The notes beneath the pieces are model-generated. The model searched no databases, was not told the DNA's origin, and saw nothing but the letters and a program-made list of their open reading frames with translations. Below are positions 1 through 64,000 of a stretch of 64,000 nt of DNA, in pieces; the stretch's first letter is position 1; each line of letters begins with the position of its first letter. The stretch is from Ascidiella aspersa (lineage: Eukaryota): contig OZ004612.1 in NCBI GenBank assembly GCA_963924565.1, forward strand, positions 806,001 through 870,000. Reading direction: 5' to 3'. The translations under genes and the position numbers were made by a program.

Positions 1-1190
1 CGAAATACGACGCTTTTGATGTTTACTGTGTTTTCAATATACATCAAAGTCAAGCATTCATCTATGTTGAATTTGTCAGTATCCTCCTTTAGTTGTTTTT
101 CTAAATTCTCATCGAAACGAGATTGTTGCAAGATGTCAATTGTTTTTATCTTCATTTGATCGTAGATTGCATCATCGCCACAAACAAAGCATATTTTAGT
201 TAAAATATCACCCAAGTGGTAACCGTTTTTAAGGTCAATATCCCGTCCAAGATATTCAAGCATTTCAGAAACAGGTTTGATCAGCTCAGTATCCCAGGGT
301 TTGTTCGGTGTAGCTGACCTACCAAGTGGGAACTTGCAAGCAAAAGTAACCATTCCATCAAACGAAATACCACGAGGTGTGTGCGCATCAAAGAACCAGC
401 CCTTACCAATATTTTCCTCAGGCTTATTAATGAATGGCAACGAAACGTGAGGTATTAGTGTTTCACCAAAGTTTACAACCACAACTTGAAACATCACAGA
501 CACCCAACGGAAATATTGAAGTACTTCCTCATAATCTGAACGATTTTGAACACCTTCTTCCAACAAATAGATGTGCTCGAAATCTGAATAAGGAGTGATT
601 TCATTTCTAGCAAGTGATCCCATTCCAACCAAAGCATATTTACAAGGAGCTGGACCTGTAGCTTCCACACAAAACTCCATTATATCTGCCATGAGCCATT
701 TGTATTTTTCTGTGATGATTTTTTGTAAACTCTCTATCAGAATAGTTCTACGTTGATCGGTTTCTGCAAGTGAAATTGCTTTTAGCGCAATATCCTTTAT
801 CCAACACCGAAAGTCCTTCACTTTAGTGACAGATGCTTCAACCAGTTGCTTCAAACTGTCCACACTGGTGTCATGTCTGCCAGCAAGTTGAAGAACACGC
901 GAACAAAGCTCAACGAGATCTTTCTCAACCTCAGCAACGTTGTCAGGTTTCCTCACAACAGCTGCGTTTAACAACACAGCGCTGCGAATAAGAGATATTT
1001 TCTTGTCTCTGCCCTCGGGTAATACATCAGCTATTTCGTGATATGCCCGGCCGAGTTGATGGATAACTTTGGCGGATTGTCTTACATCACGTTCCTTTCC
1101 GTTTGCGTAACATAATGACTTTAATTCCTCCGCAAGTTCAAAAGTTTTAGCTTTGTAAATACTGGCTTTAGTATCTGAGCACCCTTGCAT
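1..1190 (-). CDS. NTase(GlnD/DUF294-like)-TPR protein, copy 1, 5' part (runs off the left edge)
   Basis: ATG at 1190. Manual translation MQGCSDTKASIYKAKTFELAEELK...GMGSLARNEITPYSDFEH...VNIKSVVFR appears open to base 1 and is near-identical to the N-terminal half of the 17545..20574 ORF. It is missing from the ORF track because no stop lies in the window. Confidence 0.88.
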   Translation of the reverse strand, partial: MQGCSDTKASIYKAKTFELAEELKSLCYANGKERDVRQSAKVIHQLGRAYHEIADVLPEGRDKKISLIRSAVLLNAAVVRKPDNVAEVEKDLVELCSRVLQLAGRHDTSVDSLKQLVEASVTKVKDFRCWIKDIALKAISLAETDQRRTILIESLQKIITEKYKWLMADIMEFCVEATGPAPCKYALVGMGSLARNEITPYSDFEHIYLLEEGVQNRSDYEEVLQYFRWVSVMFQVVVVNFGETLIPHVSLPFINKPEENIGKGWFFDAHTPRGISFDGMVTFACKFPLGRSATPNKPWDTELIKPVSEMLEYLGRDIDLKNGYHLGDILTKICFVCGDDAIYDQMKIKTIDILQQSRFDENLEKQLKEDTDKFNIDECLTLMYIENTVNIKSVVF

Positions 1191-4100
1191 GTTTTAACCA
1201 ATAGTAAATTTCTAAAAGAGCAATTGCTGTAAGTAATACAATACAGAGTAAAATTAATGTTATTTACGTGTTTAACGACGTCTGCATTTCAAGCCACCAA
1301 GTACTACTGACTGTAATTCAACATACATTGTAACTACAGCGTAATATTAAATTTTAAACAATACAAGTTGGCCGGCTGTGACGCGAAAATACATAGACAA
1401 TTAGACATAGAGCCATTGTTTGTCGGCGCGAGCAACGAGCAAACATAATCCCGTAATGTTTGTTTCAAACCTTAACGACAATGTTTCAGGGCGAAGTAAC
1501 AATTTGTAGTTTAGATAAATATATTTTGGAATAACTGTTTTTAATTGTTTCTTTCGACTATTAAAACTACGGCAAAATGCACAACTATTTATAAGTTTAA
1601 TAAATAAATATATTCAAATGCGTTTGCGGTGAGTTCCTACAATTGGTAGCCTACTGTTTTGTTGATTAAATTAAGTTTAAAACTAAAATCGCTGCGTTAC
1701 ATCGAAAACAGAAAATCCGATATAAGGTTGGTTGGTTTGGGACCGATACCACCTATATTATCGGACGACAACCGATACTCAACTTGGCATCGCACAAAAG
1801 CTCCGGTTCGATGTTATCCTTCTGTATTACTGACTTGAAAATTTTGATAATTTTTGACTGAAATTACATGCACTAAAATTGATTTTTTGAAGTCCACATT
1901 TGGAACCCAGTTAAAAGGCAAGTCCTGTTGTCATAATTAAATTTACCTGACGACCAAAGTGAACCTTTCAGCTAACTGGAAGCCACAGCAACAACTTCGT
2001 CCTAAAAATCTTGTTCGATGTTCTGTATGGCGCACTCTATTGACGCACCTACAGCTGCTTTGACGTTTCTTGTACGGTCTAGCAATCTTGCGTGCTACAA
2101 TTGTGCTGGAATTTGTAAAAACCTTTTCATAAAAGGCATTTTTGTCCGTTAAATAGACGTGTTAACTAAAATATCGAAAATAAATTATGTATAGCTGCTA
2201 TTGAATACCGTATTTCGAATTTGTACTGACTTAGGAGCTGGTTTCCTAAACAGCGGAACTAATCACACTGAGGTCGCTGCGAACTTTTCTGCCGTTTCTT
2301 TGTTAGAAGCGCTTGACTGAAAACCAGGCATCCGCAAAATTTCTGTGGGGCAACCTAAGACTTGTGTACAATATGGACGAATCTGTATGTAGCTTGATAA
2401 TGAATCTCAAAGCCAAAAGAATCGAGCAAATAGACATCATCATATTAAATACGTTTTGATACAAACTTGTATCATCTTCAGTTAATGTGACTGAAATCTT
2501 ATTAAGCCTCATGAACTATAAAAGGTGAAACGCAATTTCATTCATGGCGCAATTCATTTCATAATGTATATGGGAGGCAAAACTTGTGGAATAGAATTTT
2601 ATTTAACATCAAACTTTACTTAAAATCATCAACATCTTTTGATAAAGATTTCGCGAACGCTGTGTTAAATAATTTGACTCAAACGCGAAACAAAACGATG
2701 ATGGTTGCAGAATTCGTATTTTTAGACAAACATTTTCTTGTCGTCACAAAATAAATGAAACGTGACGTCATAAAAAGAGTAACATTAAGAAAAAAGTACT
2801 TTGGTCATTCGAAAGACATGTCTTTCTCTGCATTCGGGTTGCTTTAAACATCTCCAATCTTAATACTTCGAAACGTTTTGCTTTCACCTTAGTTTAGTTT
2901 CAACACATTTGTTTGCAAACGTTCACTATAGCGGAATGCTGACGCGGATACAACTTCCAACTAAAAACCTTTAGGTGGACAGACCTCTAAACTCCTAAAA
3001 ACACTTTCTGAGTGGTGTTTTGTGGCAATATTTGTACATCAAGGCCAGGGGCAAAATTAAAAGGTTTACCGACTACACGCTGTTTGGGGAAAATTAATAT
3101 ATGTGAATCACCATTGGTCTCGGCCGAATATTATCGCCCTTTGATTTGGTTTGGGTTATTTGAAGGTTATTTTTCCGAAATTCTTAATAATTGTTGCAAG
3201 CTATTCGTCATATACGATGGGTGATATCGGTACTGGCAAAATACCAATTTAATATAGGAAATTACTGTCATAATTTGCGTTTAGTCTAGTTGCATTTTAA
3301 AACGTAGGTTAAATTTAACGAAAATTATAAGTCAACATCTGTAGGTAACTAAACTTATTTATGCTAAAACAAATTTAGGCCCTATAATAAAAACCTTTAA
3401 ACGTTTTAATTTTGCTTGTTTTTCCACAGTAATGACGTGATTTGGTATCGAATCGCGATACTTGTGTCCAAAATATCGGGTGTGTGTATCGTAATGAAAT
3501 GTCAAGTATCGTGCATCCCTACTTGTAACCAACCAACCATATTATTGTAATGAATTATTGTTTGGTCGTGTAATAAACCACATTTCTCGTTTGTATTAAT
3601 GTTGTGACACTCTGCAACGTTGTATACTGACTATAGACGCTGCCGGACTCAAACTTCATTATTTGGTGAAACTTTAATAAATGCTGGCGATTTGCTTATT
3701 TTATTTGAACACATATCGTGAACGGCGTGAGAATACAAAAACTATTATCACCAGTTCTCAACCTGTTTGATCTTAGATGTAATTAAGAAACCTAAACACG
3801 CCTTACCATCACCGCAAAATACAAAAAACACATGTTTCTATTTACCGAGCGTGTAGCGCCACAGTGCAACTTTTAGGCACAATGTCTTTTGTTTAGCTCC
3901 CTGAAGATTTTTTTCGCGTTCCGTAACATTCTTTTAGGTTACATGTTAATAGCCACATTCATTTAGTATGGGCTATAACACCAGGCTAAAATTTGCACGG
4001 ACATGTTACAACGTAATGCAATAGTGATAAAGAACCCGTATATGATGGATTCTTAATGTTGTTTAACCACGCAAAATTCAGATTAAATTAAATTATTATT

Positions 4101-4689
4101 TTGTTTAACCACCTAAACACATTTTCGCAACTTACCGCGCTTATTGCAGTTGTAGTTAACTTACATCGTCGGGACACCACAGTCGTCCTTAAATATAGCA
4201 ACGCCACAATTTTATTTAATTATGTAATAAAAAGTGCCAGGAATACAGAGTTTAAAGAGGTAGATCACGTTTAAAATGGCTTTATTTGCTGGTAAGTTCT
4301 TCTCAGACAAAATTTCATGAGCGTTTTCCTTTTGAAAACTGACGCGATGAAAGAAGTAACAAAAAGTAATAAAATGAAAGGACAAACTAACCAATCTTAT
4401 AAAGCTTGTTACAACATATTTCTGCAGGACGCTAAGCGAATCAATGCTAATGTCCAGACACCAATGCCCGTTTATTATTCCATTGTTTATTTTTGCACAG
4501 AAAGTCCCTAGTCCTGTAACATTTTAGAAATATATACATAAGAGAAATATTTTGTTTTCCCGAAGCCTTAAAATAAGTTGCACTGAAAAATACTTTTATT
4601 TCAAGACCAAAGTAAATAAACATAACTGATCCATTAAATGTAGCAATTAAAACCATATTTTGAAAGGAATATTTGAGAAGAAATTGTAA

Positions 4690-5874: not shown

Positions 5875-6141
<267 letters not shown>

Positions 6142-7958
6142 TGTTTTTTTTAGTTTTTTAAAGGTTTTGTTCGATTTTAAGACTTGTTTGTTGTGCTTAG
6201 CGCGATTATGAAATGTGTGTTCGCAATATTATTGAAGCTACAAATTATACGTAACCTGGTTCTATCAAAAAACGCCCAATTGGACCAATTCTCAATCTAG
6301 GTGTTTTCGGTTAGAAGATTTTTACCAGAAATGGTGTTACTTTTGATATGTTGCATTTTATTTTTCACGTTTGTTAACTAACGCCAGCATAAACGTAAAA
6401 TCGTTGCAATTTGAATATTCTACAATCATCGAATTTCTTCGTGTTTCGCCAGCTATCTTTGTCAATAAATTACGTTTTTTGAAACTTGCTTGCTTTTGAA
6501 GACTGACAATTCATCAAACATCACTTCGTTAAAAAGTTGCACTTACCGACAACAACTGCTGACCCGGACAAGATCCAATAAGATATTTATCGAACTAATA
6601 TCCTCTCTTAGTCACGACCAGACAATTGAAGTGCTGGGAGACTTTTGGTTCTTATTTGTTGTTTAGTTTACAAAACGCGCCAACTCCAGGAATAAAGTAT
6701 CCGTCGTTTATCAAAATTTACATCAGCCGTAAGAAAACATATAAGTTGCCCCTTTTCTTTGTCTGGTGATATCATTTAGACTTTAAGAATAGACATCTAT
6801 TTAAAATGCACCTCATTTTGTAAACTGTTATTTAGATATAACGAAATGATTAGGTGCAATTAAATTGAAATTCTTCGTAGACAATTTTGTTCTTGTGTTA
6901 GAAGGCTAATATTTCGCATCTAAATGAGTATAAAGGCTGTATCAAACCTATTTTGTGTTTCAGTGAAAACCTTTAGAACATCAAAGTTAAAAACAAAATT
7001 GTTTTAATTCGAAATGGTTTTACTTTTAAAAAAGGCTTTAAATTGAAACATTATGTAATTGAGGTTCCAAATAATTCAAATTATACGACAAAAACAATTG
7101 AGTTATTGGTTTTAAAATATATTCAGCTATTAAACTATGAAATTTATGCCTGAAGATTATTTATAACTTTCTTAACAGTTAAAAAATATTGTAAGTTATT
7201 TGTGGGGATTAACTCACGGCAAGAAATGGCGTGTAGTTGCAGCAATTGCAACAATCAACTTGATTAAAGGAATGGCATTTCAGAAAATTTACATTTTAGG
7301 AAAATATATTACGATTTTGTCATAATTATAGTTATTTTATCTTGCAAAATCAACAGAAATCCGTTTATGAAAGTTTTAATGGTCGTAAGATTATGACTTT
7401 GCCGGTTTTTGCAAACACTTTCAACGTATAAATAAACTGGTCTACTAGCGGTTACTAAACTTTTGTTAACAATGCAAAACAGATTTGGTTAGAATGTTGA
7501 GTTTTTTAAAATTGTTTTAGTAATGATTTAGCCTGGATTTTTTTGTGATGACCTTTCACTGGTATTTTATAATTTTTCCTCTAGGTGTTTAGAGCACTGC
7601 TTATTTACTTGCCAGGTCACTTGAGAAAACTTTAGTTTTATTGTTTTTATTTGATCATTGCCTCGATTGTAGTCGGCGTTACGTAACAATGATGAGCGCA
7701 GCGCTGTATTGTGACGCGTGTTGCTAAACAATTCCTTCAGTTATAGAATGTGACGTCATCGCTAAGCGCGATAAACTCTGGTTCGCTTGAAATCGCTTGA
7801 TATTTAACTTGTATGCGGGAATAGGCGACCACTGCTCTACAAACTCAACTAACAACAATATTAACAAAAATATGTTTTATTAAAAATGAAAGAAAGTTAA
7901 ATTTGTCGTGATTAAAAGCTCGGCAAGTTTTATATTGCCATAGCAACGGTTAATTGTC

Positions 7959-10937
7959 TCACTCGCCAAAGGGATGGTCGATTTTGCTCCACCACTTGAT
8001 TGCTGTGTTAAAACCCTTGACTGCTTTTTTAATTAGTTTCATCTGCCAATAACATTCACTGATTCCCAAGTGACAACCTGCAATATGCATCGCTGCTTCT
8101 TCATCGGGATCCGACGTCGAATGAGGTTCAATATCTTGTTCAAAGCATTTCACCGCATTTTCAAACTTGCCAAGTTGTCGATGCGAATGACCGACATAAC
8201 AAATCGGATATGTATATTCTTCTGGTGACACTATTTTTGTGTATACTTGCTGTTTTTCGAAATAAGCAACAACCTGTTCAGGTTTGTTTAATTCAAAGCT
8301 ACAAGTAATAAGTTCCCCATAACATTTTTCAATCATGGCATCTCTCTCTACAGTTTTATGAAAACCCAAATATATTTTTTGGGAAGTTTCCAATGAGTTA
8401 TAAGCTTCCTCGTATCGATCAAGTTGGTAAAGGAAAACTCCAGCGTTATATTGTGCTTTTGCAACTAACCGCATAAAGTCATATCCCTGATGTCTATCAC
8501 ATGTGGAGTTTGCTTCTTTAAACTGATCCAACGCTAATTTGTTATTATTGTTGTTACCATTATGTATTCCAATACAACTAAATATTTCAGCTCTGGCACG
8601 AACTTTGCTTCGCTGAAATTGTTTACTTGAGGGGAAGAGTTCATAAGCTTCCTTACACAATTCACTTGCTCGTAGAAAGTTTTTCTTTTTTTACGTGAAT
8701 TTTAGCCCGAAAACGTTTGCATTTAGCAAGGAGATGACATTTGTCAGTTGGAACGTAATGCTTACTCTTTGAAATCTTTTCCGCCATTTCAATTGCTTTT
8801 TCAGCTTCTGTGTAGTTTTCCATCTCGGTGTGAGTTTGAGCAAGTTCCAAAAACGCAATTGCTGTGTCGTGATCTGAAGTTTCATTAAAAGCTCTTTCAC
8901 GACATTGAAGTAGATATTTCTCGCCGTATTTAATGCTTTCTTTGTATTTACCAATACCAAGGAAATACCTAGCAATGTATAGTTGTGCACTGTTTGAAAC
9001 ATTGTCATTTAGAACAATGTTGATTATATCGCCAGCCTTCTTAAACATACGCGTATCAACATAGAACCCGAACAACTGGCATTGGACTTCTCGTATCTCC
9101 ATATCTGTGGCGCTAAAATGCAAAGCTTGTTCGTACCATTTAATCGCATCCAACTCCATTCCAAGTTCATTGTAACCACTTCCCATCATATACAAGGTGA
9201 AAGCCCGACTTGGATCGCGGTCCTCCATAAAATCTAAAGCATGTTGAAAGCACTCTAAAGCGCATTCGAGCTGATTAACTGCATAGTGACAAATACCTTC
9301 CAAAATTCGACTATGTTTTTTTGTTCCTTTTAACTCAAATACATTTCCGCTTCTGCATTTTTCAATGACCTTTATTGCATCGTTATACAAACGTAAAGAC
9401 ATAATCGACTTTATAACACGAAACCAAGTTGATTCTTTTGGTTCGGATTGCTTGATAGCGAAAATTTGCAAAGTAGAAGCTAAAGAGAAAAATTCAACAA
9501 TTCTTGATTTTCCGAATAATTCGAGCAACAAATCATGAAATGGTTCGAATCTTGCGTCAAGATAATTGCACTGGCCGGAGTATTTGAAGTAAACCCGCAA
9601 CCTAACTTCACAGGCGAAAGCAAGTGCGAACATAAAATCCTCCGATTGTTGCTGTGATATTTGGCTTGGAGTCAATTCCCGCAGAATATCGAAAGAAGAC
9701 GACGATTTGCAATTATATCGTCTACCAAGTGCTGCTATAAACAAAGTGACGCTTCGAAATACGACGCTTTTGATGTTTACTGAGTTTCCATTATGCATCA
9801 AATTTAAGCATTTATTGATGTTAAATTTGTCAGTATCCTCCTTAAGTTGGTTTTCTGGGTTCTCATCGAAACGAGGTTGTTGTAAATGTCAATTGTTTTT
9901 ATCTTTATTTGATCGTAGATTGCATCATCGCCACAAACAAAGCATATTTTAGTTAAAATATCACCCAAGTGGTAACCGTTTTTAAGGTCAATATCCCTTT
10001 CAAGATATTCAAGCATTTCAGAAACAGGTTTGATCAGCTCAGTATCCCAGGGTTTGTTCAGGGTAGCTGACCTACCAAGTGGGAACTTGCAAGCATGTGG
10101 CATCATTCCATCAAACGAAATGCCACGAGGTGTGTGCGCATCAAAGAACCAATCTTGGTCGTTGTTCCGGTCATTAATGAAAGGCAAAGCTACGCTTGGT
10201 ATTATGGTTTCACCAAAGTTTACCACCACAACTTGAAACATCACAGACACCCAACGGAAATATTCAAGTATTTCTTCATAATCTAAACGATTTTGAACAC
10301 CTTCTTCCAACAAATAGATGTGCTCGAAATCTGAATAAGGAGTGATTTCATTTCTAACAAGTGATCCCATTCCAACCAAAGCATATTTACAAGGAGCTGG
10401 ACCTGTAGCTTCCACACAAAACTCCATTATATCTGCCATGAGCCACTTGTATTTTTCTGTAATGATTTTTTGCAAACTCTCTATCAGACTAACTCTACGT
10501 TGATCGGTTTCTGCAAGTGAAATAGCTTTTAACGCAATATCCTTTATCCAACACCGAAAGTCTTTCACTTTAGTGACAGATACTTCAACCAGTTGCTTAA
10601 AACTGTCCACACTGGTGTCATGGCTGCCAGCAAGTTGAAGAACACGCGAACAGAGCTCATCGAGATCTTTCTCCACCTCAGCAACGTCGTCAGGTTTCCT
10701 CACAACAGCTGCTTTCAACAACACGGCGCTGCGAATGAGAGATATTTTCTTGTCTCTACCCTCGGGTAATTCGTCAGCTATTTCGTGATATGCCCGGCCG
10801 AGTTGATGGATAACTTTGGCGGATTGTTTTACATCACGTTCCTTTCCGTTGGCGTAACATAATGATTTTAATTCCTTTGCAAGTTCAAAAGTTTTAACTT
10901 TGTAAATACTAGCTTTATTAACTGAGCACTCTTGCAT
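7959..10937 (-). pseudogene. NTase-TPR copy 2, frameshifted
   Basis: Three ORF pieces (9804..11009, 8662..9801, 7959..8660) are collinear with copy 3. There is a 1-nt loss near 9885, an extra T in the run at 8686-8692 and an extra G at 7971-7973. The motif reads GSLVRNEITPYSDFE. ATG at 10937. Confidence 0.8.
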
Positions 10938-12231: not shown

Positions 12232-12405
12232 CGAGGGCTGTATTGTGACGCGTGTTGCCAAACAATGGCTTGGGTTCTACAAATGTGAGATCCTCGATAT
12301 TTTACAAACTCTGGTTCGCTTGAAATCGCTTGATATTTAACTTGTATGCGGGAATAGGCGACCACTGCTCTACCAACTGAACTATCAACAAAGTGAACAA
12401 ACTAA
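12232..12405 (-). repeat. About 170-bp conserved module with a tRNA A-box/D-arm. Other copies at about 7697-7865, 16545-16715, 34095-34185, 38675-38850 and 42345-42381+46635-46775
   Basis: Shared core gatatttaacttgtatgcgggaataggcgaccactgctctaccaactga(a/g)cta. The minus strand reads TAG(T/C)TCAGTTGGTAGAGC. Confidence 0.8.
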
Positions 12406-17544: not shown

Positions 17545-20500
17545 TTATGAAAAAATCTCGGCAAGTTTTATAATGCCGTAGCACAGGTTAATTTTTTCAT
17601 TCGCCAAAGGATGGTCGATTTTTCTGAACATCTTGATTGCTGTTTTCGAACTCTGCATTGCTTTGTCATATAGCTTCATCTGCAAATAACATTCACCACT
17701 TTGCTTGTGACAATCTGCAAGAAACATCGCTACCCTTTTATCGGAATTCGACGGCGAATGAAGTTCAATTTCTTGTTTAAAGTATTTCACCGCATTTTCA
17801 AACTTGCCAAGTTTTTGATACGAACGACCGACCAAACAAAACAAATATTTTTGTTCTTCTAATGGAACTAGTTTTATATACTCCTGTCCTTTGTCGAAAT
17901 AATCAACAACCTGTTCAGGTTTGTTTAATTCAAAAGTACAATTAATGAGTTCCCTATAACATTTTCCAATCATGACATCCCCCTCTACAGTTTTATGAAA
18001 TCGTAAGAACATTCCTAAAGAAGTTTCCAGTGTGTTATAAGCTTCCTCGTATCGATCAAGTTTGTAGAGACAAAATCCAGCATTTAATTGCGCGTTTGCA
18101 ACAAACAGCATAAAGCCATGTTCCTGATGTCCATCACATATAGAGATTGCTTCTTTAAACTGATCTAACGCTAATTTGTAATTATTGTTGTTACCATTAT
18201 GTTTTCCAATATACATATACATTTCAGCTCTGACACGAACTTTGCTTCGATGAAAATGTTTACTTGAGGGGAAGAGCTCATAAGCTTCCTTATACAATTC
18301 ACTTGCTCGTAGAAAGTTTCTCTTTTTTACGTGAAGTTTAGCCAAGAGCCATTTGCATTGAGCAGGAAGATGATATTTGTTGTTTGGAACGTAATGCTTA
18401 CTCTTAGAAATACTTTCCGCCATTTCAATTGCTTTTTCAGCTTCTGTGTAGTTTTCCATCTCGATGTACGTTTCACCAAGTTCTAGCAAGGCAAATGCTG
18501 TGTCGTGATCTGAAGTTTCATCGAAGGCCTTTTCACGACATTGATGTAGATATTTCTCGCCGTATTCAATGCTTTCTTTGTATTTGCCAATTCCACGGTA
18601 ATATTGAGAAACATATAGTTGTGCACTTTTCGAAACATTGTCGTTTAACACAAGCCTAACCATTCTACCAGCCTTTTCAAGCAGACCTTCATAAACATAC
18701 AACCCCAACAATCCACATTGGACTTTTTGTGTGAACATATCTGTGCTGCTTGAATGCAAAGCTTTTTCGTAGCATTTAATCGCATCCAAGTTCATTCCAA
18801 GTTCATTGCAACAACCTCCCATTATATTCAACATTATAGCTCGCGTTGGATAGTGGTCTTCCATAAACTTTAACGCATGTTGAAAGCATTTTAAAGCTAT
18901 TTCATGCTGATTAAGTCTATAGTGACACAAGCCTTCTGCAAAGCAACTTAGTGCTTTTGTTTCTTCAAACAAAACTATATTTTTGCATCTTACTTTTTTC
19001 ATGACCTTTATTGCTTCGTTATATAAACGTAAAGACATAAGCGAAAATATAACAAGAGGCCAGGTTAATTCCATCAATTCAGATTGCTTGTTGGTGAACA
19101 TTTGCAAAGTGGAAGCTAAAGAAAAAAATTCAACAATTCTTGATTTTCCAAATACTTCAAGCAACAAATCATGGAAAGGTTCGAATCTTGCGTCAAGATA
19201 ATCGCACTGGCCGGAGTATTTGAAGTAAACCCGCAACCTAACTTCACAGGCGAAAGCAAGTGCGAACATAAAATCATCTGATTGTTGCTGTGATATTTGG
19301 CTTGGAGTCAATTCCCGCAGAATATCGAAAGAAGACGACGATTTGCAATTATATCGTCTACCAAGTGCTGCTATAAACAAAGTGACGCTTCGAAATACGA
19401 CGCTTTTGATGTTTACTGAATTTTCATTATGCATCAAAGCCAAGCATTTACCGATGTTGAATTTTTCAGTATCTTCTTTAAGTTGGTTTTCTAAATTCTT
19501 ATCGAAACGTGGTTGTTGTAAAATGTCAATTGTTTTCGTTTTCATTTGATCGTAGATTGCATCATCGCCACAAACAAAGCATATTTTAGTTAAAATATCG
19601 CCCAAGTGGTAACCGTTTATAAGGTCAATATCCCGTCCAAGATATTCAAGCATTTCAGAAACAGGTTTGATCAGCTCAGTATCCCAGGGTTTGTTCGGTG
19701 TAGCTGACCTACCAAGTGGGAACTTGCAAGCATGTGGCATCATTCCATCAAACGAAATGCCACGAGGTGTGTGCGCATCAAAGAACCAATCTTGGTCGTT
19801 TTCCTGATCATTAATGAAAGGCAAAGCTACGCTTGGTATTATGGTTTCACCAAAGTTTACAACCACAACTTGAAATAACACAGACACCCAACGGAAATAT
19901 TCCAGTATATCATCATAATCTGAACGATTTTGAACACCTTCTTCCAATAAATAGATGTGCTCGAAATCTGAATAAGGAGTGATTTCATTTCTAGCAAGTG
20001 ATCCCATTCCAACCAAAGCATATTTACAAGGAGCTGGACCTGTAGATTCCACACAAAACTCCATTATATCTGCCATGAGCCATTTGTATTTTTCTGTGGT
20101 GAGTTTTTGCAAACTCTCTATCAGACTAGCTCTACGTTGATCAGTTTCTGCAAGTGAAATTGCTTTTAACGCAATATCGTTTATCCAACACCGAAAGTCT
20201 TTCACTTTAGTGACAGATGCTTCAACTAGTTGCTTCAAACTGTCCACACTGGTGTCATGGCTGCCAGCAAGTTGAAGAACACGCGAACAAAGCTCATCGA
20301 GATCTTTCTCCACCTCAGCAACGTTGTCAGGTTTCCTCACAAGAGCTGCATTTAACAACACGGCGCTGCGAATGAGAGATATTTTCTTGTCTCTACCCTC
20401 GGGTAATTCGTCAGCTATTTCGTGATATGCCCGGCCGAGTTGGTGGATAACTTCGGCGGATTGTTTTACATCACTTTCCTTTCCGTTTGCGTAACAGTAT

Positions 20501-20574
20501 GACTTTAATTCCTTTGCAAGTTCAAAAGATTTAGCTTTGTAAATACTAGCTTTATTAACTGAGCATCCTTGCAT
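17545..20574 (-). CDS. Intact NTase(GlnD/GlnE/DUF294-like)-TPR protein, copy 3, 1009 aa from ATG
   Basis: Uninterrupted ORF. The track's TTG start at 20646 lies at a putative 5'-UTR intron, so the first ATG at 20574 is used. GS..R.E....SD.E motif at about 19960-20010. The NIK...R / SSFDIL..L / EVRLRVY helical domain resembles GlnD/GlnE NTase C-domains. The C-terminal half has repeated TPR-like units (A...G......A...F..AL). Confidence 0.92.
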   Translation of the reverse strand: MQGCSVNKASIYKAKSFELAKELKSYCYANGKESDVKQSAEVIHQLGRAYHEIADELPEGRDKKISLIRSAVLLNAALVRKPDNVAEVEKDLDELCSRVLQLAGSHDTSVDSLKQLVEASVTKVKDFRCWINDIALKAISLAETDQRRASLIESLQKLTTEKYKWLMADIMEFCVESTGPAPCKYALVGMGSLARNEITPYSDFEHIYLLEEGVQNRSDYDDILEYFRWVSVLFQVVVVNFGETIIPSVALPFINDQENDQDWFFDAHTPRGISFDGMMPHACKFPLGRSATPNKPWDTELIKPVSEMLEYLGRDIDLINGYHLGDILTKICFVCGDDAIYDQMKTKTIDILQQPRFDKNLENQLKEDTEKFNIGKCLALMHNENSVNIKSVVFRSVTLFIAALGRRYNCKSSSSFDILRELTPSQISQQQSDDFMFALAFACEVRLRVYFKYSGQCDYLDARFEPFHDLLLEVFGKSRIVEFFSLASTLQMFTNKQSELMELTWPLVIFSLMSLRLYNEAIKVMKKVRCKNIVLFEETKALSCFAEGLCHYRLNQHEIALKCFQHALKFMEDHYPTRAIMLNIMGGCCNELGMNLDAIKCYEKALHSSSTDMFTQKVQCGLLGLYVYEGLLEKAGRMVRLVLNDNVSKSAQLYVSQYYRGIGKYKESIEYGEKYLHQCREKAFDETSDHDTAFALLELGETYIEMENYTEAEKAIEMAESISKSKHYVPNNKYHLPAQCKWLLAKLHVKKRNFLRASELYKEAYELFPSSKHFHRSKVRVRAEMYMYIGKHNGNNNNYKLALDQFKEAISICDGHQEHGFMLFVANAQLNAGFCLYKLDRYEEAYNTLETSLGMFLRFHKTVEGDVMIGKCYRELINCTFELNKPEQVVDYFDKGQEYIKLVPLEEQKYLFCLVGRSYQKLGKFENAVKYFKQEIELHSPSNSDKRVAMFLADCHKQSGECYLQMKLYDKAMQSSKTAIKMFRKIDHPLANEKINLCYGIIKLAEIFS

Positions 20575-31910: not shown

Positions 31911-34516
31911 TATTTGTATTTGTTTGGGTTTATGAGGGTTAATAGGACGGGTAAGCGTTCGATTTAGAGGACTTACTATGGGAATTAGTGATGAAGTTGA
32001 GGGTAGGTTTTTAGGTTAGTTAAATGGTATTTTAGGCCTTATTTTAAAATATATTAAGCCTTATTCTAAAAGGTTTAGGCCTTTTTTCGATAATATATTA
32101 TTGCGACACTTATTTGTTAGTCTAATTTTGGTTCAAACTTTAGTATTATTTTGACGTTGATGTTTCTCCAATTTCTGCTTTATTAGTGGAATCAATTGAA
32201 ACTTAAACCACCTAAACACAATACTTTGAGTCAGTTTAAATAAAGTTATTAGAAGCCTTTTTATTTTGCTCGACATAAACTTTGTATAATTTCACTAATT
32301 TTGATAATTTGACCTTTGTAGTTGTAACAAATTTAATTAAAACGTCTGGTTTAATTTAGACTGTTTCTGAAGTGGTGATTCTATCGTTTTATTTAATCAA
32401 AACAAATTTGATTTAACTGTTTTAATTGTGTTTTCAATTGATTTTTTGTAATATATGTGGCTAAATGCAAAGTGTTTACTCATTTCCTGGAGGTAAATGT
32501 TTTTTATCGCACGTGTTCTAGTTTCATACCATGGTAATAGGTCCATGATACTGGGGTGTAAACAAAGACGACATTTATCCATAAATAATTGAATCTAACG
32601 CAAATAAATTATATTAACTTCACGATTGTATTATTTTCACCAATAAACACAAACAGCGACGTTTACAAAAGTGATCACCCAACCAGCAATTTGCATCCAC
32701 ACATAAAAGCACCCAGACATAATATAAACAAGCACATAAATACACCTTCATACTCGATACACGCACTCGTATAATGCCGGCAAAGTAGGTTATAGTCACC
32801 GCTGTAAATATGCTGACTCGCGATGAAGTTTGAATACACCGTTGGTGCACAACAAGCTAAGGTTTGAGCCAGGGTTGTCAGATGCTGGGTTAAGATTAGG
32901 ACATTGTTGGTGTAAAATTCGGACATTTTAGGTAAAATAATATTTAGCAAGGACCTATAGTGCAAGACTAAAGGGAATCAATGGAGTTAGCTGTTCTTGG
33001 TAAGCAGTCAAAATTCCTTACAAAGTTACAAAACATTTAGTCTTTAACGGTAGTCCAATAATAAACCTTTCTGTAAATTCTATTTCCTTTTGCCAAAACT
33101 GCAACACCAATTTTCTTACTGGAATTATGTGGATGATTTAGAAAAGGCCATGTAAAAGTTATGATACCGCTGACAAGTAGAAATACTTTGCTTATAATCT
33201 ATTGTAAACCTAGCATAAAATTTATTGTAAGTTGGCCTAAATTTCAATTTGGAACTAAAGCGCCCTATACTACACCTGACGCTTTTATGGTGCACAGAAT
33301 TATTCTATAAATACGCATCAAAATCGTGCAAAGCGCGAACATTTTTTGATTTATGTTGGTAAAGTTGGTATAAACAATTTTGGAAGCCTCGTGAGCCCGT
33401 GGTTTTACTTCATCCCACAATGTTTCAAATAAATTCGGCCAAATCAGGACAGAAAGCTTACTGTTCCAATAGTTTTCAAACCGCCGGACACAGCAGTTAA
33501 AATTAGAACAATATATCCTTTTTGGTCCGAATTTAGGTAAATTCTGGTTTGAGCGTCCATTCCCCCCCACACGCGACCCCCTAGACAACCCCTTGCGATC
33601 CCCTTGGGGGTCGCGACCCCCAGTTTGAGAACCATCGGTATAGAAAAAAATATTAACAAAAAATTAATCCATTAAACAAACCAAATCTATCAATATTTTA
33701 CCGAAGCTAAGATAACTCTCGAAATGAAACCAAAATCAACTTGATTAAAGGAATGGCAATTTAGAAAAGTGACATTTTAGGAAAATATATTACGATTTTG
33801 TCATAATTATAGTTATTTTATCTTGCAAAATCAACAGAAATCCGTTTATGAAAGTTTTAATGGTCGTAAGATTATGACTTTGCCAGTTTTTGCGGACACT
33901 TTAAACGTATAAATAAACTAGTCTACTAGCGGTTACTAATCTTTTGTTTACAATACACTACAGATTTGGTTGGAATGAGTTTTTTAAGATTGTTTAGTAA
34001 TGATTTTAGCCTGGATTTTTTTGTGATGACCTTTCAACTGGTATTTTATAATTTTTTCTCTAGGTTATTTACTTGGCAGGTCACTTGAGAAAACGCTTAA
34101 AATCGTTTGATATTTAACTTGTATGCTAGAATAGGCGACCGCTGCTCTACCAACTGAACTATTAACAAAGTGAACAAACTAATGTTTTATTAAAAATGAA
34201 AGAAAGTTTAATTTTTTCGATTTTAGTTAAACAATATGTCTGGAACATCACAGATCTTCTTAACTTTATTAATAACATCCTAAAATCATATTGACGCTGT
34301 AAATCATTGTTAAAAGGCACCGGGGGTCGAAACAAACGATCGAAAAATAGTTTTTGATTTATACGCGACAAATTTAAAAGGGCAATAAACAGGAATACTT
34401 AAGTCCATTGGCGGACACCAGTTCATTCAAAGGAGCTCAATAATTAAACAGAAGTTTATTTTTTTGTGATTAAAAGCTCGACAAGTTTTATATTGCCATA
34501 GCATCGGTTAATTGTC

Positions 34517-37501
34517 TCACTCGCCAAAGGGATGGTCGAATTCTCTCCAAAACTTGATTGCTGTGTTAAAACTCTCGACTGCTCTTTTAATTAGTTTCAT
34601 CTGCCAATAACATTCACTGATTCCCAAGTGACAACCTGCAATATGCATCGCTGCTTCTTGATCAGGAACCGACGTCAAATGAAGTTCGATTTCTTGTTCA
34701 AAACATTTCACCGCATTTTCAAACTTGCCAAGTTGTTGATACGAACAACCGGCATAACAAATCGGATATGTATATTCTTCTGGTGACAATATTGTGTATA
34801 CTTGCTGTTTTTCGAAATTATTAACAACCTGCTCAGGTTTGTTTAATTCAAAGCTACAACTAATGAGTTTCTTATAACAACTTCTAATCATGTAATCTAT
34901 CTTTACCGTTTTATGAAATCCCAAAAACATTCCCAAAGCAGTCTCCAGTGTGTTAAAAGCTTCCTCGTACCGTTTTCGTTGGTAGAGACAAACTCCAGAG
35001 CTTAATTGCACATTTGAAACTAACCACATAAAGTTATGTCCCTGATGTCCATCACATGTGGAGATTGCTTTTTCAAACTGATTTAACGCTAATTTGTAAT
35101 TATTATTGTTGTAGTTATGTATTCCAATACAGAAATACATTTCAGCCCTGACAAGAACTTTACGTCGCTGAAATTGTTTACTTGAAGGAAAGAGCTCATA
35201 AGCTTTCTTATACAATTTACTTGCTCGTAGAAAGTTTTTCTTTTTTACTTGAACTTTAGCCCGGAACGCTTTGACTTCAGCAGGAAGATTATCTTTGTCG
35301 TCTGGAACGTAATGTTTGTTTTTAGAAATATTTTCAGCCATTTCAATTGCCTTTTCAGCTTCTGTGTAGTTTTCCATTGTGATGTAAGTTTGAGCAAGTT
35401 CTAGCAATGCACCTGCTGTGTCGTTATCTGAAGTTTGATCGAAGGCGTTTTCACGACATTGAAGTAGATATTTCTTTCCGTATTCAATGCTTTCTTGGTA
35501 TTCACCAATTCCATGGTAATACCGAGCAATACAGAGTTGTGCATCTTCCGAAACATTGTCTTTTAAAAGAAAGTTGAGCATGTTACCGGCCTTTTTAAAC
35601 AAATGCTCTTTCACATATAATGTCAACAATTCACATTGGACCAATTGTGTAACCATAATTGTGCTGCTTGAATGCAAGGCTTGTTCGTGGCATTTAATCG
35701 CGTCAAAGTTCATTTCAAGTTCATAGTAACATCTTCCCATCACATGCAAGGTTGAAGCCCGATTTGGATCGTGGTCCTCCATAAAATTTAAAGCATGTTG
35801 AAAGAACTTTAAAGCGGTTTTACGCTGATGAACTCTATGGTGACAATAGCCTTCCCAAATGCAACTCATTTTTTTTGTTCCTCTTATCTCAAAAATATTT
35901 TTGCTTTTGCATTTTTCAATGACCTTTATTGCTTCGTTATACAAACGTAAAGATATAATCGACTTTACAACACGAAACCAAGTTGATTCTTTTGATTCAG
36001 ATTGCTTGATGGTGAACATTTGCAAAAAGGAAGCAAGTAAGAAAAATTCAACAATTCTGGATTTTCCAAATTTTTCAAGCAACAAATCATGAAAAGGTTC
36101 GAATCTTGCGTCAAGATAATCGCACTGGCCGGAGTATTTGAAGTAAACCCGCAACCTAACTTCACAGGCGAAAGCAAGTGCGAACATAAAATCATCTGAT
36201 TGTTGCTGTGATATTTGGCTTGGAGTCAATTCCCGCAGAATATCGAAAGAAGACGACGATTTACAATTATATCGTCTACCAAGTGCTGCTATAAACAAAG
36301 TAACGCTTCGAAATACGACGCTTTTGATGTTTACTGAGTTTACATCATGAATTAAACCCAAGCATTTATCGATGTTGAATTTATCAGTATCTTCTCTAAG
36401 TTGGTTTTCTAGATTCTTATCGAAACAAGTTTGTTGTAAGATGTCAATTGTTTCCATTTTCATTTGATCGTAGATTGCATCATCGCCACAAACAAAGCAT
36501 ATTTTAGTTAAAATATCGCCCAAGTGGTAACCGTTTTTAAGGTCAACATCCCTTCCAAGATATTCAAGCATTTCAGAAACAGGTTTGATCAGCTCAGTAT
36601 CCCAGGGTTTGTTCGGTGTAGCCGACCTACCAAGTGGGAACTTGCAAGCAAAAGTAACCATTCCATCAAACGAAATGCCACGAGGTGTGTGTGCGCATCA
36701 AAGAACCAGCCCTTGCCATTATTTTCCTCGGGATCATTAATGAAAGGCAACGAAACGTGAGGTATTAGGGTTTCACCAAAGTTTATAACCACAACTTGAA
36801 ACATCACAGACACCCAACGGAAATATTCAAGTATTTCTTTATAATCTGAACGATTTTGAACACCTTCTTCCAACAAATAGATGTGCTCGAAATCTGAATA
36901 AGGAGTGATTTCATTTCTAGCAAGTGATCCCATTCCAACCAAAGCATATTTGCAAGGAGCTGGACCTCTAGCTTCCACACAAAACTCCATTATATCTGCC
37001 ATACGCCACTTGTATTTTTCCGTGATGATATTTTGCAAACTCTCTATCAGACTAGCTCTACGTTGATCGGTTTGTGCAAGTGAAATTGCTTTTAACGCAA
37101 TATCCTTTATCCAACACCGAAAAGTCTTTCACTTTAGTGACAGATGCTTCAACCAGTTGCTTCAAACTGTCCACACTGGTGTCATGGCTGCCAGCAAGTA
37201 GAAGAACACGAGAACAAAGCTCATCGAGATCTTTCTCAACCTCAGCAACGTTGTCAGGTTTCCTCACAACAGCTGCATTTAACAACACGGCGCTGCGAAT
37301 GAGAGATATTTTCTTGTCTCTACCCTCGGGTAATTCATCAGCTATTTCGTGATATGCCAGGCCGAGTTGATGGATAACTTTGGCGGATTGTTTTACTTTA
37401 CGTTCCTTTCCGTTTGCGTAACATAATAACTTTAATTCCTTTGCAAGTTCGAAAGTTTTATCTTTGTAAATACCAGCTTTATTATCTGAGCACTCTTGCA
37501 T
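34517..37501 (-). pseudogene. NTase-TPR copy 4, frameshifted
   Basis: ORF pieces 37058..37501, 36589..37038 and 34517..36661. Extra A at 37120-37123, extra GT in the (GT)n at about 36685-36692, and the same C-terminal extra G as copy 2 at 34529-34531. Confidence 0.8.
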
Positions 37502-47283: not shown

Positions 47284-50200
47284 TTATTTTTTCGATTTCA
47301 AACCACGTCTTGCAAGTTTTTTTGTTTTGTAGCAATGATTAATTCTCTCACTCGCCAAAGGATGGTCGATTTTTTTCCACAACTTGATTGCTGTTTTCGA
47401 ACTCTGCATTGCTTTGTCATGTTGCTCCATCTGCAAATAACATTCACCGATTAGCTTGTGACAATCTGCGATAACCATCGCTGCATCTTTATCGGGATCC
47501 GACGTCAAATGAAGTTTGATATCTTGTTCAAAGCATTTTACCGCATTTTCAAACTTGCCAAGTTGTTGATATGAACGACCGACATAATATAATAAATATT
47601 TTCGTTGTTGTAATGAAAGCTGTTTCATATATTCTTGCCCTTTTTTGAAGTAATTAACAGTCTGTTCATGTTTTTCAATTTAAAGCCACAAATAATGAGT
47701 AACACAGAACAGTTTCCAATCATGTGATCCATCTCTACAGTTTTATGAAAACCCAAATACATTTTCAGAGAAGTTTCCAGTGTGTTATAAGCTTCCTCGT
47801 ATCGATCAAGTAGGATAAGACAAATTCCAGCGTTTAATTTCGCGTTTGCAACTAACTGCACAAAGTTATGTCCTTGATGTTCATCACACGTGGAGATTGC
47901 TTTTTGAAACTGATATAACGCAAATTTGTAATCATTGTTGCTACAATAATGTATTCCCTTACACCTATACTTGTCAGCTCTGACAAGAACCTTGCTTCGC
48001 TGAAAATATTTACTTGAGGGGTAGAGCTCATAAGCTTCCTTAAACAAATCACTTGCTCGTAAAAAGTTATTTGTTTTTACGTGAATTTGAGCCCGGAGCC
48101 GTTTGCATTCAGCAGGGAGATGATATTTCTTGTTTGGAACATAATGTTTACTTTTCGAAATATGTTCCGCCACATCGATTGCGTTTTCAGCTTCTGTGTA
48201 GTTTTCCATAGCGATGTAAGGTAGAGCACGTTCTACCAACGCAACTGCTGTGTCGTGATCTGAAGTTTCATCGAAGGCGTTTTTACGACATTGATGTAGA
48301 TGTTTCTCGCCGTATTTAATGCTTTCTTGGTATTTTCCAAATGCACGGTAATACCGAGCAATACAGAGTTGTGCATATTTGTAAACATTGTCGTCTAGAA
48401 CAAGGTTAAGTATCTTGCTGGCCTTCTCAAACATATTCTCTCTAACATACAACCCGAACAACTCGCATTGGTATGGTCGTGAATTTTTGTTTGTGCTGTT
48501 TGACTGAAAAGCTTTTTCGAAACATTTAATCGCAAGCAAGATAAATCCAAGTTCGTTGCAACAAATTCCAATCTCATACAAAATTACACTACGCCTTTGA
48601 AAATCTAACGCAAAGAACTTTAAAGCAAGTTCATGTTGATCAAGTCTAGAGTGACACAAACCCTCCAAATAGGAAATGTCTGCTTTTGAAGCTTTTAACT
48701 CAAATGTATTTCTGCTTTTGCATGTTTTAATGACCTCGATTGCTTCGTTATACAAACGTAAACACATAAGAGAAAGTATAACACGAAGCCAAGGTGATTG
48801 TTTTGATTCAGATTGCTTGTTGGTGAACATTTGCAAAATGGAAGCTAAAGAGAAAAATTCAACAATTCTTGATTTACCAAATACTTCCAGCAACAAATTA
48901 TGAAATGGTTCAAATCTTGCGTCAAGATAATCGCACTGGCCGGAGTATTTGAAATAAACCCGCAACCTAACTTCACAGGCGAAAGCAAGTGCGAACATAA
49001 AATCATCCGATTGTTGCTGTGGTATTTGGCTTGGAGTCAATTCCCGCAGAATATCGAAAGAAGACGACGATTTGCAATTATATCGTCTACCAAGTGCTGC
49101 TATAAACAAAGTGACGCTTCGAAATACGACGCTTTTGATGTTTACTGAGTCTTTCTCATGCATCAAAGCCAAGCATTTATCGATGTTGAATTTGTCAGTA
49201 TCTTCCTTAAGTTGTTTTTTCAAATTCTCATCGAAAAGAGGTTGTTGTAAGATGTCAATTGTTTTCATCTTCATTTGATCGTAGATTGCATCATCGCCAC
49301 AAACAAAGCATGTTTTAGTTAAAATATCGCCCAAGTGGTAACCGTTTTTAAGGTCAATATCCCTTTCAAGATATTCAAGCATTTCAGAAACAGGTTTGAT
49401 CAGCTCAGTATCCCAGGGTTTGTTCGGTGTAGCTGACCTACCAAGTGGAAACTTGCAAGCAAAAGTAACCATTCTATCAAACGAAATGCCACGAGGTGTG
49501 TGCGCATCAAAGAACCAGCCCTTACCATTATTTTTGTCTGGATCATTAATGAAAGGCAACGAAACGTGAGGTATTAAGGTTTCACCAAAGTTTACAACCA
49601 CAACTTGAAACATCACAGACACCCAACGGAAATATTCAAGTATATCATCATAATCTGAACGATTTTGAACACCTTCTTCCAACAAATAGATGTGCTCAAA
49701 ATCTGAATAAGGAGTGATTTCATTTCTAGCAAGTGATCCCATTCCAACCAAAGCATATTTACAAGGAGCTGAACCTGTAGCTTCCACACAAAACTCCATT
49801 ATATCTGCCATGAGCCACTTGTATTTTTCCGTGATGATTTTTTGCAAACTCTCTATCAGACTAGCTCTACGTTGATCGGTTTGTGCAAGTGAAATTGCTT
49901 TTAACGCAATATCGTTTATCCAACACCGAAAGTCTTTCACTTTAGTGACAGATGCTTCAACCAGTTGCTTCAAACTGTCCACACTGGTGTCATGGCTGCC
50001 AGCAAGTTGAAGAACATGCCAACAAAGCTCATCGAGATCTTTCTCAACCTCAGCAACGTTGTCAGGTTTCCTCACAATAGCTGCATTTAACAACACGGCG
50101 CTGCGAATGAGAGATATTTTCTTGTCGCGTCCTGTTGATAATCGGGCAATTATTTGATATGCAAGGCCTAGTCTGTGCATGACTTTAGCAGATGTCTTGG

Positions 50201-50300
50201 GGTCTCTTTCTTTTCCGTTTGCAAAGCATTGTGACTTTAACTCTTTTGCTAACGGTTCAGTAAAGCTTATCAAATATTCAACAGACACAGTGTTTCCCAT
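47284..50300 (-). pseudogene. NTase-TPR copy 5 with a divergent N-terminus (MGNTVS); single late frameshift, so possibly a functional 891-aa truncated form
   Basis: An 891-aa ORF at 47625..50300 plus a C-terminal piece at 47284..47628. There is a 1-nt loss in the T-run near 47671-47675 relative to copy 3. Acceptor ctttttcacag lies 20 nt upstream of the ATG. Confidence 0.8.
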
Positions 50301-63800: not shown

Positions 63801-64000
63801 AACTATATTTTTTTATAAATAAACCACTAAAAATGTAGTTATTTTAGCAAAAGTATCAAGCGGTAATCATGTTTCTAAAACGTTAAGAGCAACGGCCAAA
63901 TCTCACCATCAAACTTCTCCCTCAACGTGAAACGATCATTTGCTTCTCCTGGCTCAAAAACCCCTGTCCTTTACTGCAATTTAAAAGGTATAATATTAAA

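Follow-up and report, generated by a model that had tools for sequence, protein, structure and literature searches.

Tandem paralogs in the window and in the genome

We analyzed a 64-kb stretch of Ascidiella aspersa DNA (the window). A tblastn search with copy C as the query, the only copy in the window with an uninterrupted coding sequence of about 1000 amino acids, detected five paralogs (A-E), all on the minus strand. These copies and the elements attached to them are listed below.

1..1190, minus strand: copy A, the first 394 codons of a paralog whose remainder is cut off by the window start (tblastn)
7913..10937, minus strand: copy B, a frameshifted paralog (tblastn and ORF reading)
17545..20574, minus strand: copy C, a single-exon CDS of 1009 aa
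20575..20896, minus strand: upstream region of ~320 bp common to copies of the cluster, which may be a promoter or 5' UTR
34471..37501, minus strand: copy D, a paralog whose frame is shifted by insertions of +1 (near 37123) and +2 (near 36693)
47311..50300, minus strand: copy E, an 891-aa ORF starting at its own ATG
50580..50687, minus strand: remains of the original start of copy E (aa 1-36), now displaced

The copies are arranged head-to-tail and their nucleotide sequences are 84-92% identical. The original prediction described five single-exon paralogs of about 1000 residues, each carrying the motif GMGSL(A/V)RNEITPYSDFE. Five copies are present and the motif is found in all of them (A, 576-626; B, 10323-10373; C, 19960-20010; D, 36886-36936; E, 49695-49745), but an intact CDS is limited to copy C, and the remaining four of the five copies are broken or truncated. 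The second motif, EVRLRVY, is present in copies B, C, D and E; the sequence of copy A ends before that point.

Copy A has no frame break within the window and is 88% identical to copy C in amino acid sequence; its locus (C6:805625-807190) has an open frame of 692 aa only. Copy B has lost 1 nt near 9886, so that its frame runs into a stop at 9804, and has gained 1 nt near 8692. Copy D retains an open 714-aa ORF downstream of its frameshifts. In copy E, the first ~18 codons have been replaced, an insert of ~330 bp separates the ORF from the displaced start remnant, and a -1 shift near 47673 removes the last ~115 aa. Judged from their reading frames, copies B and D are probable pseudogenes, and sequencing error may account for the frame breaks of these two copies and of copy E. 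A ~130-bp tandem duplication (17403-17530 matching 17561-17690) makes the C-terminus of copy C atypical.

For the window copies, the repeated unit consists of the CDS together with ~320 bp of 5' and ~0.4-0.7 kb of 3' sequence. A larger block is common to some neighbours only, with 7253-13354 matching 33734-40000. Within the common upstream region, a conserved polypyrimidine-AG, a putative acceptor, lies ~20 nt before the ATG. Copy C is also preceded by a triple GCGTCAC..CCGGTTATT motif, which was absent from the other copies examined.

A genome-wide copy count, proposed with the original prediction, gave ~80 family loci in A. aspersa, of which 50 fall in one cluster of ~2 Mb (C6:0.72-2.66 Mb). 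About 40-45 of the loci have a reading frame that stays open for about 1000 codons. The window holds the decaying edge of this tandem cluster, and the family is intronless and lineage-specifically expanded. Its loci sit on chromosomes of 33-40 Mb with 35% GC. More divergent paralogs (40-67% identity) also exist, and orthologous clades are found in Ciona and Clavelina; these indicate a long residence of the family in tunicates.

The two halves of the protein evolve differently. The enzyme half of 28 intact paralogs has a dN/dS of 0.32 and a column entropy of 0.15-0.5 bits, and their tetratricopeptide repeat (TPR) half has a dN/dS of 0.68 and an entropy of 0.7-1.3 bits. The enzyme half is under purifying selection and the TPR half diverges fast. 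Locus number, dN/dS, entropy and the broken copies together bear out the earlier view of a tandem birth-and-death cluster in which a constrained enzyme half is joined to a variable TPR half. A parsimony per-site N/S count over the 28 paralogs, a crude test which takes no account of recombination, gave 5 of 500 TPR-half sites at p < 0.05. Because this is no more than expected by chance, diversifying selection is without support.

In RNA-seq data (6% of one run), trace sense-strand reads were found on the enzyme-coding part at a depth of 3.8 or less, and none on the TPR part of copy C. These reads are mostly 96-99% alike, and thus may stem from paralogs. The read sets X1-X3 have an even depth and look like DNA runs.

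Domain architecture, fold and active site

The domains and catalytic elements of copy C, all encoded on the minus strand, are as follows.

20245..20574, minus strand: N-terminal TPR-like helical cap, aa 1-110 (model secondary structure)
19540..20040, minus strand: nucleotidyltransferase (NTase) core of GlnE/DrrA/DUF294 type, aa 179-345 (Pfam PF03445, fold matches)
19960..20010, minus strand: catalytic motif GMGSLARNEITPYSDFE, G191-S192-x10-D203-x-E205 (spacing, conservation, DrrA alignment)
19846..19848, minus strand: E243 in an invariant G-E-T, candidate third metal-binding carboxylate (spacing and conservation)
19075..19512, minus strand: helical KNTase_C/HEPN-like domain, aa 355-500 (VIA-align, HEPN-like chains at Z about 9)
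17620..19041, minus strand: TPR array, the variable half, aa 512-985, ~470 aa (Pfam TPR_12, TPR_2, TPR_1 and others)

Pfam DUF294 (PF03445) was matched above its cut-off of 21 bits by copies C (30.7), E (33.4) and B (28.9), and many TPR families were matched as well. PF10335 (DUF294_C) had no match in copy C at E <= 0.1; it is on record for many homologues. The N-terminal cap resembles TPR proteins weakly (residues 8-108, VIA-align Z about 7-8). The Pfam scan detected no P-loop NTPase of the NACHT or NB-ARC kind, and the NTase domain leads straight into the TPR array. Since no signal peptide was evident when the sequence was read by eye, the family proteins are probably cytosolic.

A search of PDB sequences with the family profile gave a marginal match to DrrA (E 0.035), in which the GS...SD motif was aligned with the GS...SDLD of DrrA, and GlnE was without a match at E <= 10; a fold search was therefore needed. 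We used an AlphaFold model of aa 1-520 (pLDDT 82.9, pTM 0.84). In Foldseek, just four chains scored E < 1e-3, one of them DrrA (E 8e-7) and three GlnE. By VIA-align, DrrA had a Z of 23.1 with 316 of 339 residues aligned and an rmsd of 3.6, and the N- and C-domains of GlnE had Z of 19.0 and 18.1, respectively; unrelated folds reached ~9 or less. The matches to DrrA and GlnE span model residues 68-500, which cover both the NTase core and the helical domain.

The active site was compared in 89 sequences from tunicates, amphioxus, octocorals and bacteria, including a distant outgroup. G191, S192, D203, E205, G242-E243 and D276, as well as K390, R395 and R446 of the helical domain, are 96-100% conserved; the last three are invariant family-wide. 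In the family, G and D are 12 residues apart, and D203 and E243 are 40 residues apart. The corresponding motif of DrrA is G98-S99 ... D110-x-D112 with D150 as the third carboxylate, and the acidic triad of GlnE is D701/D703/D753 (PMC7815794). The second carboxylate of the family is Glu (E205) vs. Asp in DrrA. Spacing and conservation make E243 a candidate for the third metal-binding carboxylate. D276, in a low-confidence loop of the model, is a second conserved carboxylate candidate.

From the letters alone, the original prediction had assigned these proteins to the Pol-beta superfamily of NTases (by the signature of bacterial GlnD/GlnE/DUF294 proteins) with a helical partner domain, apart from the OAS, cGAS/Mab21 and PAP/TUTase families. 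Pfam, the fold searches and the conserved putative acidic triad uphold this assignment, with the GlnE/DrrA/DUF294 kind as the closest. The Pol-beta NTase fold is present, DrrA and GlnE rank on top, the helical domain is of the KNTase_C/HEPN-like type, and OAS and Mab21 are found neither as Pfam matches nor among the strong structural matches.

Comparison with known proteins

The best structural match to the N-domain is DrrA/SidM of Legionella pneumophila (PDB 6yx5, 3nku). It shares with the family an NTase core followed by a helical C-part, the G-x11-D-x-[DE] motif and, for the candidate third carboxylate of the family, the same distance of 40 residues (PMC7815794), at a sequence identity of about 11%. 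After this part, DrrA has GEF and PI4P-binding domains, and the family proteins have TPR repeats. Moreover, DrrA is secreted by a bacterium as an effector, whereas the family consists of chromosomal animal genes. GlnE (PDB 1v4a, 3k7d) has the same fold and helical partner domain and a probably equivalent acidic triad (PMC7815794). Unlike the family, it consists of two such domains in tandem, is controlled by PII and has no TPR. GlnD continues from its NTase into HD and ACT domains; neither was found in the Pfam scans of the family, in which TPR repeats follow the NTase. The probable GlnD-sized proteins of sampled bacteria did not reach E < 1e-3 against the family profile. In free-living bacteria, the usual partners of DUF294 are cNMP-binding or CBS modules, and none of these was detected in the Pfam scans of the family. 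A bare DUF294 protein of another bacterium matched the family profile with only 20 bits.

Relatives with organism names come from tunicates, amphioxus (dozens of proteins), octocorals and protist endosymbionts, the latter being Holosporaceae and Neochlamydia with ten or more copies per genome. These bacterial proteins are true sequence relatives. They are 27-36% identical across the whole N-domain (E down to about 1e-45), with DUF294 followed by a C-terminal TPR array and with identical catalytic residues. They frequently carry additional F-box, HEAT or ankyrin modules and are presumed to be effectors inside protist hosts; the Neochlamydia NEX2 family is F-box-[OTU]-DUF294-TPR (PMC4209131). 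No F-box was found in the Pfam-scanned ORFs of the window or in the sampled relatives from tunicates, amphioxus and octocorals. In a quick maximum-likelihood tree, the root of which was set on a very long DUF294 branch, the bacteria came out basal. AU tests rejected neither animal monophyly (p 0.42) nor chordate monophyly (p 0.54).

We found no description of an animal DUF294/GlnE/DrrA-like family in the literature searched. The claim that the family is undescribed thus stands for animals within that literature; it does not extend to the architecture, since DUF294-TPR has been published for Neochlamydia NEX2 (PMC4209131) and relatives carry automatic names. Databases name them [quoted passage not shown], which should not serve as a statement of function.

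FICD and SelO are animal AMPylases, and protein AMPylation is the chemistry proposed here; FICD carries TPRs too (PMC12409994). Their catalytic folds (Fic and pseudokinase) are unrelated to that of the family, and they are single-copy conserved genes, whereas the present family is expanded. Receptors of the STAND/NLR type have a NACHT or NB-ARC domain between effector and repeats, which the family does not have.

Proposed function and its alternatives

The explanation which we consider best, and probable, is that the locus belongs to an expanded intronless NTase-TPR family whose members carry out protein NMPylation that is directed or gated by the TPR array. Because the only characterised structural relatives modify proteins in this way, protein NMPylation is the most likely function suggested by the comparison. 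The enzyme would modify proteins with a nucleotide monophosphate, most probably AMP taken from ATP. The TPR array of each paralog would select or sense a different partner, and it would either recruit the substrate or gate the active site. In DrrA, binding of a partner allosterically activates the domain with this fold, a precedent for such gating (PMC7815794). The sense-strand reads on the enzyme-coding part are in line with this explanation. Its weak points are the Glu at the second carboxylate, the lack of a characterised activity among DUF294 proteins, the removal of AMP by the GlnE N-domain, the thin RNA-seq coverage, the absence of a positive-selection signal in the TPR half and the broken or truncated state of four of the five window copies. 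Immunity, allorecognition or the control of symbionts may be the arena in which such proteins act.

A narrower proposal, along the lines of the original prediction, is that of an innate-immune sensor-enzyme: binding of a pathogen-derived ligand to the TPR array would switch on the enzyme, which would then NMPylate proteins as the immune output. The large lineage-specific tandem expansion, the pairing of a constrained enzyme half with a variable repeat half and the birth-and-death decay of copies are all in its favour, and the animal members occur only in marine invertebrates whose innate repertoires are known to be enlarged. Intracellular bacteria, too, have multiplied proteins of this architecture, which presumably act as effectors on their hosts (PMC4209131), and the DrrA switch again provides an allosteric precedent (PMC7815794). 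However, no fusions to Death, TIR, CARD or NACHT domains were seen among the members sampled, the PADLOC defence models gave no meaningful match, the crude site test yielded no evidence of positive selection, and the one RNA run contained trace reads only. We regard the immune role as possible but rather unlikely. Sensor-plus-NTase logic is frequent in immunity and the Pol-beta superfamily fold is held in common, and thus the product could also be a nucleotide second messenger, a cyclic or linear oligonucleotide made in the manner of cGAS, OAS or CD-NTases, rather than a modified protein. The structural neighbours make this less likely than protein NMPylation. The strong ones, DrrA and GlnE, are all protein adenylyltransferases, and no cGAS, OAS or CD-NTase chain is among them. 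Pfam and PADLOC gave no match to Mab21, OAS or CD-NTase, and the helical partner domain is of the KNTase_C/HEPN-like type seen in GlnE and DrrA. Synthesis of a second messenger is therefore very unlikely.

The N-domain of GlnE, which has the same fold, takes AMP off by phosphorolytic de-AMPylation, and with a Z of 19.0 it is nearly as good a match as DrrA. To our knowledge, no DUF294 protein has any characterised activity. The family might accordingly remove a modification, or be a silent scaffold acting mainly through TPR binding. The G-S motif and the putative acidic triad do not vary and are under purifying selection. This speaks against a dead enzyme, although it is compatible with both addition and removal; we consider a de-modifying or scaffolding role unlikely. 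Finally, intronless CDSs, kinship to endosymbiont genes, the many broken copies in the window and the transposon fragments between copies might point to mobile-element cargo, or to functionless, recently transferred bacterial DNA, expanded without a host function. This is the least credible of the alternatives and is highly improbable. The copies lie head-to-tail on one strand within larger tandem blocks and have common 5' (~320 bp) and 3' regions; at least 28 verified ORFs are intact, with the enzyme-half dN/dS given above; and the chromosomal setting and long residence in tunicates oppose it as well. Transposon cargo, which the original prediction had named as an outcome that would speak against it, was rejected on the structure of the unit; no terminal repeats or fixed element ends were seen around the window copies. 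The only DDE_Tnp_4 fragment (44400-44831) is outside the repeated unit.

To return to protein NMPylation, a 2025 review of AMPylation lists FICD and SelO as the only eukaryotic AMPylases, and it regards the G-x11-D-x-D adenylyltransferase fold, exemplified by GlnE and SidM, as bacterial (PMC12409994). We tentatively raise the idea, which is rather unlikely, that the family is a third, so far unrecognised class of animal AMPylase in invertebrate chordates and octocorals: dozens of GlnE/DrrA-fold enzymes, each gated or targeted by a TPR array of its own, which would act as diversified intracellular receptor-effectors in immunity, allorecognition or symbiont control. Their evolution would be tied to that of effector families in intracellular bacteria. 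If active, these proteins would be a new enzyme class for post-translational signalling in animals. Tandem clusters of genes in which a constrained enzyme is joined to variable repeats are reminiscent of other diversified repertoires in invertebrates, and they offer a hypothesis that can be assayed. The kinship with the expanded families of Neochlamydia and Holosporaceae also allows one to examine whether genes have passed between intracellular bacteria and animals or their protist-like ancestors.

Gene copies in the window

The five minus-strand paralogs (copies A to E) were located by ORF listing and by tblastn with the sole intact protein, that of copy C, as query. The frame state of A, B, D and E was read from nucleotide alignment to copy C.

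3-1190, minus: copy A, clean within the window; open frame only 692 aa
7913-10937, minus: copy B, 1-nt deletion near 9886 leading to a stop at 9804; 1-nt insertion near 8692
17545-20574, minus: copy C, complete single-exon ORF of 1009 aa
34471-37501, minus: copy D, +1 near 37123 and +2 near 36693
47311-50300, minus: copy E, original start lost; -1 shift near 47673; 891-aa ORF left
50580-50687: remnant of the original start of copy E

GMGSL(A/V)RNEITPYSDFE is present in all five copies and EVRLRVY in every copy long enough to include that region, and nucleotide identity among the copies is 84-92%. The original prediction was correct in naming five paralogs with the motif but overstated them as five CDSs of about 1000 aa, only copy C being complete. 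The 3' coding end of copy C carries a tandem duplication of about 130 bp (17403-17690), which results in the C-terminus ...KLAEIFS, also found at family locus L002, rather than the usual ...KLARRGLKSKK.

Expression was examined in a single RNA-seq run labelled as the same species, of which 6% was read and mapped to 16600-22500. Reads over copy C were confined to 18964-20539 at a depth of 3.8 or less, and none fell on the TPR part in this 6%. All had the first mate on the plus strand, which fits RNA of the gene strand if the library was a standard stranded one. Because most were 96-99% alike, they may derive from paralogs. The family is probably transcribed at low level in this sample.

Upstream of copy C (20575-20640), a polypyrimidine tract ends in AG about 20-24 nt before the ATG. 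The same tract precedes B, D and loci L002, L003 and L008, with a TTTTAA variant before the displaced start of E. Most copies retain the tract, which is a candidate splice acceptor that would serve either an intron in the 5' UTR or trans-splicing of a spliced leader. About 220-270 nt upstream of the copy C ATG, a unit of about 21 nt with GCGTCAC..CCGGTTATTGT is repeated three times in tandem (20790-20850, minus strand); this motif was not found upstream of the other copies examined.

Elsewhere in the window, a very high-copy element at 21525-22500 has a DNA-contig depth 100-1000 times that of its flanks and RNA-seq first mates on both strands, its borders being marked by many loose read ends at 21621-21623 and 22330-22340. 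The compositionally odd stretch at 24001-26000 (GC 0.435, AT skew -0.22) is probably a low-complexity repeat; it includes three overlapping plus-strand ORFs at 25060-25549, and the one scanned had no Pfam match. The last 13.7 kb (50300-64000) is low in GC (0.30-0.38) and contains neither an ORF of at least 100 aa nor a member of the family.

Expansion and divergence of the family

The assembly comprises 308.6 Mb in 75 contigs, and the window is 806001-870000 of contig C6. The proposed genome-wide count gave 87 matches to aa 1-520 of copy C, which collapsed to about 80 loci, a lower bound with 83 of 115 candidates scored. Roughly 40-45 loci have uninterrupted frames of about 950-1100 codons. 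Fifty loci crowd into C6:0.72-2.66 Mb at 83-92% amino acid identity, and copies with 40-67% identity, either single or in smaller clusters, are found on contigs C2, C3, C6, C7 and C9. The window is thus the decaying edge of a megacluster.

The unit common to copies extends beyond the CDS by about 320 bp on the 5' side and about 0.4-0.7 kb on the 3' side. Larger blocks are common to some neighbours, for example 7253-13354 with 33734-40000. The sole transposase fragment found, of PIF/Harbinger type (DDE_Tnp_4; 44400-44831, minus strand), lies between D and E. Transposon cargo, which would have counted against the original prediction, was rejected: no fixed termini of the repeated unit were seen among the window copies, the unit is the CDS with its flanks, and the lone transposase fragment is intergenic. 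The copies reflect tandem segmental duplication.

Selection was compared over 28 intact paralogs (loci L001-L012, L041-L060). Column entropy was 0.15-0.5 bits at aa 41-480 and 0.7-1.3 bits at aa 500-920, and median pairwise dN/dS rose from 0.32 in the enzyme part through 0.40 in the N-terminal cap to 0.68 in the TPR part. This contrast confirms the predicted joining of a conserved enzyme to variable repeats. In a crude per-site count, multiply-hit TPR sites were numerous, and significantly positive TPR sites were in no excess. At 0.157, dS in the 5' enzyme-coding half was twofold below the 0.306 of the TPR half, which suggests that the enzyme half has undergone gene conversion or that the TPR halves are mosaics shuffled by recombination.

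Fold, active site and relatives

Pfam DUF294 (PF03445) exceeds the cut-off in copies C, E and B, many TPR families match across aa 512-985, and SidM_N matches are weak. An AlphaFold model (pLDDT 82.9, pTM 0.84) was built from an alignment of the N-terminal 520 residues of 18 A. aspersa paralogs with 39-86% identity. Foldseek against PDB gave four chains only at E < 1e-3: one of DrrA (6yx5_B) and three of GlnE (3k7d A, 3k7d B and 1v4a). An independent all-against-representatives alignment matched model residues 68-500 to DrrA (Z 23.1, 316/339 residues aligned, rmsd 3.6) and also matched the GlnE N-domain (Z 19.0) and C-domain (Z 18.1); unrelated folds reached Z of about 9 or less. In these alignments, residues 358-499 by themselves resemble HEPN/KNTase_C-type helical domains and residues 8-108 weakly match TPR hairpins. 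Together, the Pfam, Foldseek and structural matches give a modelled architecture in which a TPR-like cap precedes a nucleotidyltransferase of GlnE/DrrA type and its helical partner domain, with a long TPR array at the end, in line with the predicted Pol-beta-type enzyme. The protein has no NTPase domain, and no signal peptide was seen by eye.

G191, S192, D203, E205, G242-E243, G272, D276, K390, R395 and R446 are kept in 96-100% of 89 tunicate, amphioxus, octocoral and bacterial N-domains (numbering of copy C); one clearly degenerate paralog departs at E205. The DrrA motif is G98-S99 ... D110-x-D112 with D150 as third Mg ligand, and the GlnE counterparts are D701, D703 and D753 (PMC7815794). 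The 12 residues from G191 to D203 and the 40 from D203 to E243 are the same spacings as in DrrA. From spacing and conservation, we infer E243 as the candidate third metal ligand.

When the family profile was searched against 1.84 billion cluster representatives, 2294 clusters passed E <= 1e-3, of which 713 also passed E <= 1e-30; almost all of the best 150 align over the entire N-domain of about 480 aa. Named relatives are tunicate (Ciona intestinalis, Clavelina lepadiformis), amphioxus (dozens of proteins from Branchiostoma floridae, B. belcheri and B. lanceolatum), octocoral (Xenia, Dendronephthya, Paramuricea) and bacterial (Neochlamydia spp., Parachlamydiaceae MAGs, Holosporaceae bacterium 'Namur'). 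Most matches are unnamed, and no further animal phyla or protists occur among the named matches listed. The small endosymbiont-type genomes of 'Namur' and a related bacterium (1.9-2.4 Mb) hold at least 11 and at least 10 paralogs of the domain, respectively. The ORFs in these two genomes (L037-L040, L061-L068, L075) are 800-2300 aa long, some paralogs carrying F-box, HEAT or ankyrin modules. They parallel the Neochlamydia F-box-DUF294-TPR proteins (NEX2 expansion), which have been read as host-directed effectors (PMC4209131). A quick ML tree groups the tunicate sequences in one clade (support 100) and chordates with a single octocoral sequence in another (support 99); the bacterial lineages lie outside both, but the root is a very long branch. 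AU tests reject neither a single origin of the animal sequences as a whole (monophyly, p 0.42) nor that of the chordate sequences (p 0.54).

Possible function

The amphioxus and Clavelina proteins are already in databases under automatic names, and the bacterial DUF294-TPR architecture is published. Full-text literature searches, with most subscription journals outside their coverage, turned up no description of a DUF294/GlnE/DrrA-like family in animals. A 2025 review names FICD and SelO as the only eukaryotic AMPylases (PMC12409994).

An immune role, as originally predicted, is possible by analogy: the family is expanded, its repeats are variable and the taxa that carry it have large innate repertoires. 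Against it, the sampled members showed no immune adaptor fusions, and there was no defence-system match. Second-messenger synthesis is unlikely, as the structural neighbours, DrrA and GlnE, point elsewhere. An eraser or scaffold role is possible.

To our knowledge, all characterised enzymes with the GlnE/DrrA fold and motif put AMP on protein hydroxyls or take it off. In DrrA, binding of a partner to an allosteric face brings order to an otherwise disordered active site (PMC7815794). Because of this chemistry and partner activation, we lean moderately towards protein NMPylation as the most likely mechanism: the enzyme would transfer NMP to proteins, and each paralog's own TPR array may direct or gate it.
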